A model generated the notes under the pieces. The model saw nothing but the letters and a program-made list of their open reading frames with translations. It had not been told where the DNA came from and did no database searches. A stretch of 64,000 nt of DNA from Utricularia gibba (lineage: Eukaryota; Plantae; Magnoliophyta): NCBI GenBank assembly GCA_002189035.1, contig CM007990.1, positions 5,456,001 through 5,520,000 on the forward strand, read 5' to 3'. Below, piece after piece: positions 24,715 to 64,000 of this stretch; positions within the stretch are counted from its first letter, which is position 1, and every line of letters starts with the position of its first letter. The translations under genes and the position numbers were made by a program.

Positions 24715-25356
24715 CGTCTACCAATGAAGGTCATGTCATTTGTTTGTGGGAAACTATGTTTTATTAGGCTGGGGCCCGAAATCAGTTTAGCTCAGGCCCA
24801 TTAGTTGCCGAGATATTTTTGGCCCAAAGTAGAAGATATAAATATTTTTGGACAGAGGCGCGGAAAGAAGGCAGTTCAATTTTACCTCGAAGCGACGGTT
24901 GTTGCGCGAAGAGAAATTGGACTGGGAGCAGTGTTGATCGGACATAGTTCTATAGTCCTTTCATTTGGTGTTTCCGTTCTGGTGTGGAGACGCGGAGGTA
25001 AATCTGCGCTATTTTTGAAGGATCAGGATTCGAGACTCTGTTGTTTTTCTGTTGTAAGCATGATGTTTCTCTGCTCGTTACGAGTTTTTCTTGCTTTTTT
25101 TTGTTAGTCCGCAGGTGGTTCGTGAAGCTGTAGTATGCATTCTCGTTACGAGTTTTTTTTCTTGCTTCTTAAATTCTCGGTTTCTTCTTTTGATCTTGTT
25201 TCTGTTGTAATCGTTGTTGCTCAATGAGTTTCTGTAGACTGTGAAAATTCTTGTGATAATAGAACGTTCGGATTCCTAATATTATGAACTGTCGATTGAA
25301 TTTGGCGTTGAATCTCATCTTTCTACCTAGTTTTTGAGCATAGAAACATCCGAAGG

Positions 25357-26641
25357 ATGAAGGCATTGATAATTCATGCTGGCGCCCACGGGGTGGACTT
25401 GTGCCTTCGACATTACTTTCTTCATTGCCGATGATCGAGTTTGCTAACAAGCCTCTGGTTTCACATCAGGTAATGCGTTTTCTAGGTTTTCATTTCATGT
25501 TTATCTCAGCTCAAATTTGATCGCACAACTAGATTGAAGCGCTGGAAGCCGTTGGAGTAACTGAGGTCATCATGTTGACGGATTCTCCAACAGATGTAAA
25601 TTATGTTAACGTTATCTCTCAAAATTTACATTATGTAGGATTAAGGAATAAGAGCTCTTCAATGTTTTTCCTTGCAGGAGATGTTGAAATACTTGGCAGG
25701 TATTGCGTCCGAGTATGGCATAAGGATCAAACCCATCCGTGCTAGCGAGCCTCTTGGAACTACTAAGCCCATTCTTTTAGCAAGAGACAAATTGATTGAC
25801 AGCACCGGTGATCCATTCTTTGTCCTATTTAGTGATACTCTCTGTGAATTCTCGATGCTAGAGATGATTGCTTTCCATAGGTCGCGTGGAGGAGAGAGCT
25901 CTGTAATGGTAACCACGGTGAGTGCCGACTCTACAAACCAAAGGATGATTCTCATAATATTAAGAAAGTAAAACCATTCTGTTGATACAGGTTGATACTC
26001 CAACACATGGGGTGCTATTGATCGAAGAGGGCACTGGACGTGTAATCAAGCAGGTGGATAACCCAAAGTCTAAGGATGGAAACACTGTCTCTGCAGGAAT
26101 TTACCTTCACAATCAATCGATTCTTAACCCTCGTCCTACATCCACCGGGAATGCTGCATCCCCTAGAACTGAAACAGAGAGTCACATGTATGCAATGGCG
26201 CTGCAAGGTTTCTGGGTAGACATCAATCGGCCAGTGAGCTACATCAGTGGACTGAAGAAGTATCTTGCTTCTTTGAAGTTAAAATCACCTTCTAAGTTGG
26301 CATCTGGAAGTCATATACGAGGAAATGTATTGGTGGATGAAAGTGCTGTGATTGGGGAGGGATGCGTGATCGGGCCCGATGTTGCAATCGGACCGAAATG
26401 TATCATAGCGCCCCGTACAGTCTTAGCTCGTTGTGCAGTCTTGGTTGGGAGTCGTATCAATTCCAACACACTGGTGAATGAGAGCATCATCGGGTACCGT
26501 TCTACAGTTGGCTGTTTTACTCGTATTTGGGGCTGGACAATTCTTGGAGCGAATAGTCATGTGGGTGACGGATTGCTCATTTGTGGAGCTGCAGTGTGGG
26601 CTGGCGGGAAGATCGACCATAATCAGGTGCTGTCTGCTTGA
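25357..26641 (+). CDS. Highly divergent mannose-1-phosphate guanylyltransferase (VTC1/CYT1-like), 4 exons; apparent 1-nt frameshift in G4 at 25390-25393
   Basis: MKALII start; IEFANKPLVSHQ|IEALEAVGVTEV; EPLGT; DPFFVLFSD; AGIY; GFWVDI; beta-helix GNVLVDESAVIGEGCVIGPDVAIGP. Intron positions match VTC1 as I recall them. Confidence 0.85.
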
Positions 26642-27252
26642 ATTTGAGTCCACTTGCTATAGCTGCATTTGGGATCTGAGTTGAAGGATAATAACGTCTA
26701 CTTCTGATACGAGTCTATCTCATGTTGGATTTCGATTACGAATTTTACTTTCGTTTTGACTCCCAGGTTTTACCCTGTCGGAAGAAATAAGAAAGCTTGT
26801 TAATTCGCATGCAAATATAGCTTGGTTGATATTCATTCTATCTTGAATATGAACGCAAGTTCATCTTAACTTTACATTTCGTGTCAGAAATGAGAAGAAT
26901 AACCGAGATGTTCATGTTAGAAACGAGAAGAACCAAAAGGATGGGAGTTTTTACACACGACGACACAGGATAGCTGCAACCATGGAAGAATTTTACTTGG
27001 CCGTGAACGCACAAATTGCACGTTTGCCCGTCTTATCAGCATTGGCGAGTGAGTTTCACCATCCAATGCTAGTTTGCATATTACGATATCGATCATGATG
27101 ACATCCATGAAAACGCACTAATGTCTTATTATTATTAGGAGAGGCAAGCAAACAGGAAAGAGGATCCATCAAAAGGCAGAAATTCAAAAGTGTTGCCAAT
27201 CACAAAGACACATTACAATCTGGAGCTCCACATCCTGATTGATGCCTGCAGA

Positions 27253-28892
27253 TTATGCTTCAGCAAAGCTGCAGTTTTGGTAGCAGGGATATGTGAGCGA
27301 AGGCTTCCAAAACAAAGGAAATTAAGCTTAAACTTACCCTAGCTCAGACAGCTTTAGGTGAGCCTCAGCATAGTCTTCAAAGAAAGCATTCTCATCCTAC
27401 CACAAAACAGACTCGTTAGAATGCCATTAGCAAATACAAAGTTCTCGGATTCATTGATAAGATCTTCAAACCTCAGCATATTTCTTAACAATTGGAGAGA
27501 AGATTGGGTCACTGAGAAGGGCCTTATCTGAGGGCAACTGCAAAAGGCCGTCTTTCTCACCATTCACCAGCTCCCTAATTCAATAACATCAAAGGTAAAC
27601 ATTTCCCACCATAACATTCTAAGCTAAAATGGAAACGAGTTTCAGCAAGCCGTACTTGAAGTAAGAGTTGTCAAAGATGAGAGGGTTCTCAGTCCACGGC
27701 CCCTCAAATCCAGACCGTTCCTTGTGGCATCTTCCCTAGAATGCAAATCCCCACTTGATGAAAGCATCCCAAGTACACCAGAAACCAGTGCGATGTAAGA
27801 ATACATACCAGAGTATGACCACCGGAGAGAGCGACAATGTCCTTGTCAGACAGGCCCATTTGAGAGATAAAAACATTTCTCAGGTGATCAGAGCCTGACA
27901 ATAGAAGAAAAGCGTTTTTAGAGTGATTAAATGGTATTCCCATTAAAGTCATCTCCTTCATTCTAGTTTCTAATCCAATGTGCACAATGACGCTTACCCT
28001 GGGTAGCATCAGGAAGGCGACCTTCGACAGGTGGCTCGGTCTTGTCCTGAGATTTAAAATATGTCTTACTGAATGCTCAAACCAATAAAACCATCACAGA
28101 ATAAAACTTGAATTTTCAACAAGTATAACGATTCATCACAAGAAACAATAGGTTATGCATATACGGAAAAATATTCAACTTACCTCTCTGCCGGGGTGAA
28201 ATGGGACTTCTGGTCCTCCGGTGACTTCAACAGCAACGACTCCAGCCAACTAAATCGAAACAAATCAGTAAACAGGGAGGATTTGCAAATAACACGCATA
28301 CTGGAATAGCTCATGAATTACCTGATAGAAATCAGCAAAAGAGAGGATGGAGTACTGATCCTTGATAGGCTGCAACAGTCTGACAGCAATATCAAGACCA
28401 TTGTTGGCAGCATGGCTTAGCTCAGCCGGGTACCGGATTGTCCCAAAAGGACCTCCAGTCTTGGAGGAATGGTCAAATGTGCCAGCGGAATGCCACCTAC
28501 ATTCAAGACAAGTAGGCATCGCTTATCATTTGCCTACGAGATTAAGCACTTCCAAATCCCTACTATTTCAACCTATCAAGACAAGTTTAATCCAAGAAAT
28601 AAGCAAGAAAAACGGGTCCGAATCTTCTCTGATGTATCATGAAAACTACAGTCAACTATTTCCTCTATACTGATAAGCATAAACCTTTCATTGCGAATAC
28701 GTGCGTGGAATGCTATTCACTAAAACGTCACACATTCACCTCAACCCGAAAAAAAACACACACACACACTTACGCAAGACGGAGGATAAGCGGAGCGCAG
28801 TTCTTCGCCGATATGAGTCCCCTCAGCTTCCTTTTGGATCCCTGGACAGCCAGGAGGTACTCCTCACTCACAGCCGGGTAGCTTTTCACCAT
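27253..28892 (-). CDS. APX: Cytosolic L-ascorbate peroxidase
   Basis: [12 protein letters not shown]...[19 protein letters not shown]; [20 protein letters not shown]; C-terminal LSELGFAEA*; distal and proximal His and ascorbate-binding K/C/R present. Confidence 0.96.
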
Positions 28893-30004
28893 TTTCGCCG
28901 ATTCTTATCTACCACAACACAGAAAACGCTTCAAAACTCAAGATCTACAAACTAAGAAAAAAAAGAAAACCCTCGGAATCCAGACCTGAAGCTCCAGCAG
29001 AGAAGCGCGTGGTGAAAGAACTCCCCCACTGCATAAATACAGAAGAGGCTCATTGGAGAAAGAGAACCTTCGAGACGCCGACTTCTGACCGTCAGATCTC
29101 GATGATCCTAGAGCATCCAACGGCTGAGGCGTTCTGGTAGGTGAGAAAGCAGAATGCGCGCTCATTGACGCACATGCATTGACTATAATACCCTCGACCC
29201 CCCAAGCGAAACCGATTTGCCGCGTATGGGCTTTATGGGAAATGCAAAAAACATAGTGTGAACGCGCTGAATGGTCCGGAGATTCCTTCCCATTTCAGCC
29301 AATGGGCTCTCGAGCCATCATCACCTCTTTAATTAATTTAAATAAAATTCAATTATTGGAAAATTTAGAATAAAAATCTCCCATCACTCTCCATAATGTG
29401 CGTTACATTACAAACATAATAATTTGCGCTCAAGTCCCTAGCCACTGGACATATTTCACTATCGACCCATTTTCATCTTCAAAATGGTATAAAATGGCAC
29501 CATTCAACCAACTTTGCCTTATGATCATAAAATTGGTTTTTTAAAAAAAATTGAAATTTTGATAAATGGTATTTGAATAAAATAAATTGTTCCAAATAGA
29601 TTCTATGTATGTCAATAGGTTATGGGGCATGATTACAAAAGCGTAAAGATGGGAATAAATGTAATTACGAATGTTTATGATCATAAAAAAAGATATAATT
29701 TATGAGTTATCAATATTTACGAACGAGGGAGTAACTGTATAAATATATGTTATTTCAATTTGGTAATTAAATATAGATATTTATTTTTATAAATATTTAT
29801 TGATAAACAATTAAATGGATAATCGGATGGGCCCAATGATGGAAATGGGCCTTTGATAAGAAATGGGTTCTTATTGGGTATGAGTTGATGGGCCCTTTGG
29901 TATTTCGGGTTTTACTATTTTAAAATCATGTGTCAAATGTAAAGGCTTCTGCTGCTACATCCATCCGCCTGAATATCTCTGATCCACGTATCCATCTCTG
30001 CAAG

Positions 30005-62478: not shown

Positions 62479-64000
62479 TCAGAGGTACTTGCAGCGACCG
62501 GCACCTGAATCCAGCAAGAGAAACCGGTGAGGAAACAGTGAGCACTACGGAGAAAAGGGAGCTGTTAAGAGGGAGGTACTTGGATCGGTGACGGTGAGCA
62601 GCCCGGTGCCTGAGAAGTAACAGTTGAAATCCTGCCGACCATGTGTTTGATAAAATGAGTTCATCACGAAGGAGGCGTGCGCCCTGAGGTTGTTTGGATT
62701 GAAACAAGCCCCGCCTGCCTGGATCGGGGAGCAGTCGGTGCCCTGGCTGCATACGTAGTCAATGTTGGCCTGCAGCGCGGCGGCGCTCGTCTGGGGCTTA
62801 GGTACGCACCATTTCTTTTTGGCGCCCACCGGAGCGGCTGCCACCGGAGGCTTGTTTCCGTTTCCCTGCTGAGCAGGCCACAGACAATAAGCACTAGATA
62901 CAGAAAAAAATAGCGATAAATTCGGACAAGACGCAGATCACACGGGGTCCCGACAGCAGGCACAAGGAGGAGCATCTTTCCCTTTTTCTGGACTTCACGG
63001 GGGAAGGGTAGGAATCAATCACGTGCATAGGCTTCTTTTACAGTAAAATATTAACTTTTCACTTTATTATTATTATTATTATATTTTCAAAATCCAAATT
63101 CAATTTTGCAGGTTTTACCTGGGGAGGTGCAGAAGTTGCAGAAAGTCCGGTTGGCAAGACGCCGGCGTCGTAAACGGGGCTGAAATCGGGTCTAAACAGC
63201 CCGAAGTTTTTCTCCGACAACGGCCCCGGCTTTAGATTCTCGTTAAACAACGAAAACAGATAAGTCTCAAATCTCTTCCTGGGCATCAATGGCGTCCCTC
63301 GGCCCAATTTGTGCTTTTTCACCAAACCCCCAATGTATGCCTGTGCGTTCTCAACTGAGCAACGCGGCACTTCGAAACTATCGCCGGCGGCCGCCCACCC
63401 AGTTTCTCCCACCGCAATGTCAACGTCCCCGTAGCCGAGTCTCTTCATCGAAACGAAAACAGCATCCATCAACATATCGAACATGTTCCCGTAAGTTCTC
63501 TTGCTGTAGCGATCGAAGATTCCCTTGTTGGGGAGGAATAGAGAGAAATTGGCGTTTTCCGGGCTGTAGCCGAAGAATGGGTACGGGTTCACCATAAAGG
63601 GGGATTTGGTTTCGCGGTGAAATTGCAGAACAGGGGCGAGGTTTCCGACATCCCATCCGGGTCGGAACTTCGCGAGGCTCGGGGCTCCGATGATTCGAGA
63701 ATACCCAACGAGTGCGCCGTCGTCACGTTGATATCTCGGATCCCGGAGGCAGTAAGGGCTTGGTGGAGGCTTCTCATGGCGGCGACGAGGTTGTCGCGGA
63801 GATTCTGAGGTCCCCAGTGTAGGATTTCGTTTCCGACGAGGATGTAATTGATTCTGGTTTGGGGGTGAAACGGCTGGATGTTGGCGACGACCCAATTCCT
63901 GGCAACGTCGGGGTTGGTCAGAGAAGGGATGTCGCCGTTGGGGATGGTAACGGCGACGAGGATTCCAGTGTTGGCGAAGGCGCGCAGGATGTCGGGGTTA
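62479..64000 (-). CDS. GH17 glucan endo-1,3-beta-glucosidase with X8/CBM43 domain (5' part outside the window); apparent 1-nt frameshift at 63681-63684
   Basis: ILVGNEILHW; SPFMVNPYPFF; DIAVGETGW; FSLFNENLKPG; SEKNFGLFRPD; X8 KKWCVPK...NIDYVCSQGTDCSPIQAGGACF...HASFVMNSFYQ...CYFSGTGLLTVTDPS. Confidence 0.95.

Follow-up and report, generated by a model that had tools for sequence, protein, structure and literature searches.

The VTC1-like gene lying on the + strand of a 64-kb stretch of Utricularia gibba DNA (the window, in what follows) raises the question of whether a copy with an eroded catalytic site has been kept by selection in the form of a non-catalytic protein or is a duplicate undergoing decay. 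The enzyme at stake, GDP-mannose pyrophosphorylase (GMPP), feeds the synthesis of ascorbate, mannan and glycoproteins and is regulated by old dead paralogues, GMPPA and KONJAC. The initial annotation of the locus had left both answers standing; the analysis reported here gives about an even chance to the first, namely that the gene is a lineage-restricted Lamiales duplicate of VTC1, kept by selection and encoding a pseudoenzyme of the GMPP fold that would be devoid of catalytic activity.

Gene structure, reading frame and transcription

The gene occupies positions 25357–26641 (+), with four exons between a start ATG at 25357 and a stop TGA, and its features are the following.

24795–24800 and 24821–24826, − strand: presumed promoter carrying a pair of site II-type elements (TGGGCC) with a spacing of 26 nt
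25357–25469, + strand: exon 1, 113 nt in the window and 114 nt in run X1
25390–25393, + strand: G run; the four G of the window break the frame, the five G of DNA contig X1 open it
25470–25532, + strand: intron 1, 63 nt, GT..AG, phase 0, positioned as in canonical VTC1
25533–25595, + strand: exon 2, 63 nt, IEALEAVGVTEVIMLTDSPTD
25596–25677, + strand: intron 2, 82 nt, GT..AG, phase 0
25678–25917, + strand: exon 3, 240 nt, NTP_transferase core; GTTKP replaces GTAGP and LFSD replaces LNSD
25918–25990, + strand: intron 3, 73 nt, GT..AG, phase 0, absent from a transcript contig
25991–26641, + strand: exon 4, 651 nt with the TGA counted, coding for the remainder of the catalytic domain, followed by linker and beta-helix
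26315–26596, + strand: part coding for the left-handed beta-helix, equivalent to VTC1 residues 251–344

The exon lengths, 113(+1)/63/240/651 nt, compare with 111/63/240/672 nt in canonical VTC1, and the introns agree fully in both position and phase; the canonical structure was worked out on genomic loci from Olea, Camellia, Populus, Ambrosia, Phoenix, Paulownia and Sesamum. The copy therefore originated by duplication at the DNA level, the three introns at canonical VTC1 positions ruling out a retrocopy. No second VTC1-like piece was found within the 64-kb window.

Exon 1 reads MKALIIHAGAHG before the G run and then, in the next frame, GGLVPSTLLSSLPMIEFANKPLVSHQ; one G added to the run gives MKALIIHAGAHGGGLVP..., a product with the degenerate pyrophosphorylase signature GAHGGGLVP and with SLP where the canonical protein has PKP. 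In the 4-G version, as assembled, the frame ends 14 codons past the run, and exons 2–4 contain no further stops or frameshifts. The repair by one G that the initial annotation had postulated is borne out by an independent contig (1795 nt, depth 5.1, spanning 24725–26518) from the DNA run X1 of a 2013 study, which carries the extra G at exactly this run. Compared with the window, this contig shows one SNP (24897) and the G inserted behind 25389, the sole indel in 1795 nt; since a +1 change can rescue the frame only over a few tens of bases, and this indel lies among them, a random error is unlikely. An intact allele, supported by this single contig, runs X4 and X7 having yielded none, very probably exists, and the 4-G state of the window represents either an assembly or homopolymer error or a segregating null allele. 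The 4-G allele has an in-frame ATG at 25431–25433 (the Met of LPMIEF), just downstream of the frameshift, and a start at this codon could yield a protein without the first 25 residues, i.e., without the already degenerate signature loop.

The splice sites had been described as intact, and indeed all three introns have GT..AG ends, the removal of the third being directly seen in a 262-nt contig of run X10 (depth 2.7) in which 25916/17 is joined to 25990/91. The copy is therefore transcribed and spliced. Its level of expression is low, the coverage of this contig, the sole evidence of expression, being low and next to no words of the copy occurring in most of the species' RNA-type runs. The X10 contig departs from the window by a change of Met to the canonical Leu at 25855 and by a synonymous change at 26095. 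As to the promoter with site II elements that had been proposed upstream of the gene, the two TGGGCC motifs are present but the 56 occurrences counted across the window do not exceed the number expected by chance (51 ± 7 after shuffling).

Descent from VTC1 and loss of the active site

Both Pfam and PDB comparisons, in which single exons were used as queries as in all protein searches, place the product among the GMPPB-type proteins. Exon 3 matches PF00483 NTP_transferase (29.8 bits, cut-off 21.2) and exon 4 matches PF25087 GMPPB_C (66.7 bits, cut-off 39), with Hexapep also above cut-off and LbH_EIF2B below its own. The best PDB relatives are the structures of Arabidopsis VTC1 (8YRE chain D and 7X8J), with E values of 2e-59 (exon 4) and 8e-21 (exon 3), the next match being human GMPPB, whereas exon 4 aligns with GMPPA at 5e-12 and with KONJAC1 (8YRE chain A) at 1.6e-9. 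The contrast between these last values and 2e-59, together with the position in the tree, rules out membership of the KONJAC/GMPPA clade. Indeed, in a tree built from the protein stretch encoded by exon 4 the copy nests among angiosperm VTC1, on a terminal branch of 3.0 compared with a median of 0.063 (~48 times longer), and by codon likelihood its best placement is as sister to Sesamum and Paulownia, inside Lamiales (lnL −5291.4), against −5295.7 outside crown Lamiales and −5300 to −5304 outside Lamiales. What these comparisons support is descent from the catalytic VTC1/GMPPB-type lineage rather than from KONJAC/GMPPA. This descent, the VTC1 exon structure and the placement inside Lamiales together imply an independent derivation, as the initial annotation had suggested.

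A word search with exon 4 returned 194 proteins, all canonical VTC1 at 44–53% identity, and one with exon 3 a single canonical fragment at 50%; in an exhaustive search of 1.84 billion representatives the best full-length match was a canonical plant cluster at 49%. The closest protein thus stands at ~50% identity and no orthologue was found in these searches, an absence that constitutes weak evidence because the databases are without the gene's own product too.

The active site was examined by exon-by-exon alignment to Olea VTC1, to which the copy is 51% identical overall, and was compared with the residues singled out in the crystallographic study of VTC1 (PMC9168903). The replaced residues are G9A, T12G, R13G, R15V, P22S, K23L, Q79R, E80A, A87T, G88K, N109F, Y145H, E162D, K163N, N173S, E195G, K196N, G221N and Q222R, and those kept are G8, G11, P16, G85, T86, D111, G146, P164, G175, W217 and D219. 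The alignment confirmed the motif changes listed at the outset (GGFGTRLRP to GAHGGGLVP, PKP to SLP, EKP to DNP, DIGQP to DINRP, LNSD to LFSD) and added GTAGP to GTTKP, Q79R/E80A, Y145H, N173S and E195G/K196N, the last pair lying in exon 4, where STGNA stands for SIEKE and where the DNP and DINRP motifs are also encoded. The pyrophosphorylase signature GGxGTRLRPLT with Lys23 is no longer present (GAHGGGLVPST, P22S, K23L), and neither is the set formed by the guanine and mannose contacts (E80, G85, GTAG, N173, Y145/G146), the EKP motif and the E195–K196 pair, of which only G85, T86, G146 and P164 are retained; the metal-binding Asp111 and Asp219 are both in place, in LFSD and VDINRP. Conservation reaches 80% or more at 61 sites across 25 diverse homologues; the copy has lost 23 of these, with the losses concentrated at ligand sites.

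K163 of the conserved EKP motif has, in related enzymes, a phosphate-binding role. In VTC1, T12, R13 and K23 are seen to contact pyrophosphate and the E195–K196 pair is called catalytically critical (PMC9168903). The joint loss of T12, R13, K23, K163 and E195–K196 makes synthesis of GDP-mannose very unlikely; judging from the replaced contact residues, catalysis has very probably been lost and the copy would be unable to make GDP-mannose, so that the non-catalytic nature initially proposed for it is strongly suggested.

Two of the replaced positions have been studied in VTC1 itself. P22S, whose equivalent in the copy is the second Ser of SSLP (25422–25424), is the vtc1-1 substitution, associated with ~50% activity (PMC11066809). 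The copy also has the equivalent of D27E, the Glu of PMIEFANKP (25434–25436), a substitution that impairs the binding of CSN5B according to Li et al. 2016, as cited in PMC11066809.

Selection on the copy

The degree of conservation varies along the protein as follows.

VTC1 residues 1–225: catalytic domain, 49% identity to Olea VTC1
VTC1 residues 226–250: linker, 64% identity to Olea VTC1
VTC1 residues 251–290: first beta-helix coils, 70% identity to Olea VTC1
VTC1 residues 291–344: distal beta-helix coils, 44% identity to Olea VTC1
C-terminal tail: unrelated to that of Olea VTC1 and three residues shorter

The notion that the beta-helix is much better conserved than the rest thus holds for the linker and the first coils but not for the distal ones, the whole helix being 55% identical to Olea VTC1 vs 49% for the catalytic domain. 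The hexad core is kept along the full helix (24 of 29 aliphatic and 11 of 14 Gly positions), and the fixed indels, of +1, −1 and −3 codons, are all in frame, the extra codon being near the signature loop.

Whether such a protein could be the product of drift was assessed by 2000 neutral simulations run to 51% identity from the Olea coding sequence, a reasonable proxy for the ancestor because the canonical VTC1 protein hardly changes. Under neutrality stops accumulate to a mean of 8.0, and a stop-free frame was obtained in 0.05% of the runs (1/2000; P 0.0005). The replacements are more conservative than those of the null, with a BLOSUM62 score of −0.13 compared with −0.67 ± 0.13 (z 4.25). Furthermore, the retention of ancestral residues follows their conservation among 25 diverse GMPPB-type homologues, rising through the successive conservation bins from 30% to 57%, 61% and 67% and dropping to 50% where the sites are most invariant, in the bin containing the ligand residues; the corresponding Spearman coefficient is 0.27 (p 2e-7), against 0.013 ± 0.054 in the simulated null, whose maximum is 0.18. 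The results concerning stops, replacements, retention and indels thus reject a long neutral decay, and a fold that is retained while the active site is let go is the pattern expected of a pseudoenzyme.

The codon analysis relied on a GY94/F3x4 two-ratio branch model written for this work, pairwise dN/dS against distant orders having been rejected on account of the saturation of synonymous sites (pS 0.68–0.78). The omega of the branch is 0.30 (profile ~0.2–0.45) compared with a background of 0.049, and the likelihood-ratio test against omega = 1 yields 35.3; with Sesamum and Paulownia added, these values become 0.31 and 44.9. For the species Sesamum angustifolium only exon 4 of locus L006 was used, this locus being later replaced by L010. 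In L006 (2904–3870) the canonical VTC1 exons 1 and 3 are split across frames and the annotated 311-aa model skips parts of them; the record is flagged UNVERIFIED_CONTAM and the frame breaks are probably due to an assembly indel error. By region, omega is 0.24 in the catalytic domain, 0.21 in residues 226–290 and 0.70, not different from 1, in residues 291–361, which comprise the distal part of the helix and the tail.

These values must be read keeping in mind that 0.30 is an average over a lineage path that includes the stem shared with an unsampled canonical copy. The post-duplication omega would be ~(0.30 − 0.05(1−f))/f, f being the fraction of the path following the duplication, so that it equals 0.30 for f = 1, 0.55 for f = 0.5 and ~1 for f ~0.26, and exceeds 1 if the duplication is more recent. 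On account of this shared stem, the likelihood-ratio test taken by itself would allow for recent neutrality, which the simulation-based tests exclude. The branch dS of the copy is ~1.3, and that of the Utricularia GH17 exon at 63062–63895 (−) is ~1.5 since the Sesamum/Paulownia node, with 0.09 for Sesamum and 0.30 for Paulownia on the comparison branches (loci L011 and L012). The GH17 value indicates that the whole lineage is fast at silent sites, a circumstance that affects any dN/dS obtained on this genome.

A non-catalytic subunit or a decaying duplicate

In the preferred reading, the VTC1 gene would have been duplicated at the DNA level in Lamiales and the protein would have diverged by ~50%, losing most of its pyrophosphate, guanine, mannose and sugar-phosphate contacts and hence, very probably, its capacity to make GDP-mannose, while selection would have kept the frame, the splice sites and, in both domains, the buried core. 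Endowed with the retained linker and beta-helix, the copy may join, or compete in, the oligomers of VTC1 and KONJAC and, having entered them, could tune the supply of GDP-mannose and ascorbate, in a manner paralleling that of GMPPA/KONJAC and of the large subunits of AGPase. VTC1 dimerizes solely via the beta-helix, one inter-dimer contact of its dodecamer uses the N-terminal end of the helix, and its activity falls to about a third when the C-terminal 139 residues are removed (PMC9168903). The helix-only dimerization, the effect of the 139-residue deletion and the fact that the N-terminal end of the helix is the best-kept part of the copy render a role in the VTC1/KONJAC oligomers plausible, with the poorly kept distal coils urging caution.

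The main competing explanation, which is doubtful yet has to be taken seriously, is that a redundant copy lost catalysis, came under relaxed constraint and is by now effectively a pseudogene whose 4-G frameshift is real. The broken frame of the window, the missing catalytic residues, the terminal branch ~48 times the median, the lack of orthologues in the databases searched, the very low RNA coverage and the omega of 0.70 in the distal third would all be accounted for by such a decay, and the fast evolution of the lineage leaves the date of the duplication loose. On the other hand, only 1 of 2000 neutral simulations preserved a stop-free frame at 51% identity, the replacements are of a conservative kind and residues are retained in step with structural conservation, the three introns have consensus sites and one of them is seen to be spliced out, the sole indel distinguishing X1 from the window in 1795 nt restores the frame and every fixed indel has a length divisible by three. 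Decay survives, therefore, in a weaker form, as a recent relaxation or as a segregating frameshift allele.

It is rather unlikely that the changes in the ligand pocket, where they cluster, reflect positive selection after a recent duplication for a new ligand or partner, that is, for a role unrelated to the GMPP complexes; a duplication in the last quarter of the path would raise the post-duplication omega above 1, but the Pfam search detected no new motif or domain and expression is low. Least likely, to the point of being hardly credible, is an active nucleotidyltransferase with altered substrate or chemistry: D111, D219, G8, G11, P16, G85–T86, G146, P164, G175 and W217 are retained, but the pyrophosphate contacts T12, R13 and K23 are all gone, as are K163 and E195–K196, and P22S alone, i.e., vtc1-1, leaves ~50% activity (PMC11066809).

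The preferred reading, a selectively kept pseudoenzyme, can be set beside several known systems. With VTC1/CYT1 itself (PDB 7X8J/7X8K, 8YRE chain D) the copy shares the layout of NTP_transferase and GMPPB_C left-handed beta-helix, the four coding exons, the intron phases and the metal-binding Asp residues; it differs in its identity of only 51%, against ~88–96% among the canonical VTC1 proteins that were compared, and in having its ligand contacts replaced, one codon gained, four lost and a tail that is shorter and unlike the canonical one. The non-catalytic GMPP-like regulators KONJAC1/2 and animal GMPPA are ancient and widely conserved. The copy resembles them in its GMPP fold, its predicted inactivity and its altered signature with a length change near the same loop, and by analogy it might act as a non-catalytic subunit; unlike them, it is without the insertion in the beta-helix and is known from one lineage only. 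More distant paralogues are the AGPase large subunits and eIF2B gamma/epsilon, in which catalysis has been lost or reduced in favor of regulatory or scaffold roles; they belong to the same fold superfamily, combining nucleotidyltransferase and beta-helix, and have established partners. Arabidopsis At3g55590 and At4g30570 are, like the copy, low-expressed extra copies of VTC1 (PMC11066809), from which the Utricularia protein is distinguished by being half diverged and by the loss of its active site.

If the preferred reading is correct, a young dead paralogue originating from an active subunit would offer a view of the birth of a pseudoenzyme in progress and a natural experiment on the surfaces needed for a non-catalytic role. 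If, instead, the copy is slowly dying, it would represent what gene duplication commonly leaves behind in a genome that evolves fast.

Genomic neighborhood

The copy is convergent with a cytosolic ascorbate peroxidase (APX) gene at 26947–29000 (−), whose exon at 28268–28519 matches soybean and pea cytosolic APX (E 1e-28); ~300 bp separate the 3′ end of this gene from the stop codon of the copy, and the depth is ~1470 in an X10 contig that begins at 26947. In Olea and Sesamum no ascorbate peroxidase was found within 3 kb of VTC1, and the tail-to-tail arrangement of two ascorbate-related genes may be a coincidence. The most extended version of the preferred reading, namely that a second and young non-catalytic GMPP subunit was born independently from VTC1 in a fast-evolving Lamiales plant, beside a highly expressed APX gene, and acts on the VTC1/KONJAC oligomers so as to set the supply of GDP-mannose and ascorbate, is unlikely as a whole.

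Downstream of canonical VTC1, in both Paulownia and Sesamum, there is a CASP-domain gene on the opposite strand (comparison loci L009 14245–21695 and L010 15705–17084), and around the VTC1 of Olea no neighbor was called within 10 kb. The window contains no CASP-domain gene, which indicates that the copy is not at the Sesamum/Paulownia syntenic position. As for the neighboring GH17 exon, its top matches are with the core Lamiales Erythranthe, Sesamum, Handroanthus, Paulownia and Genlisea, at 75–81% identity.
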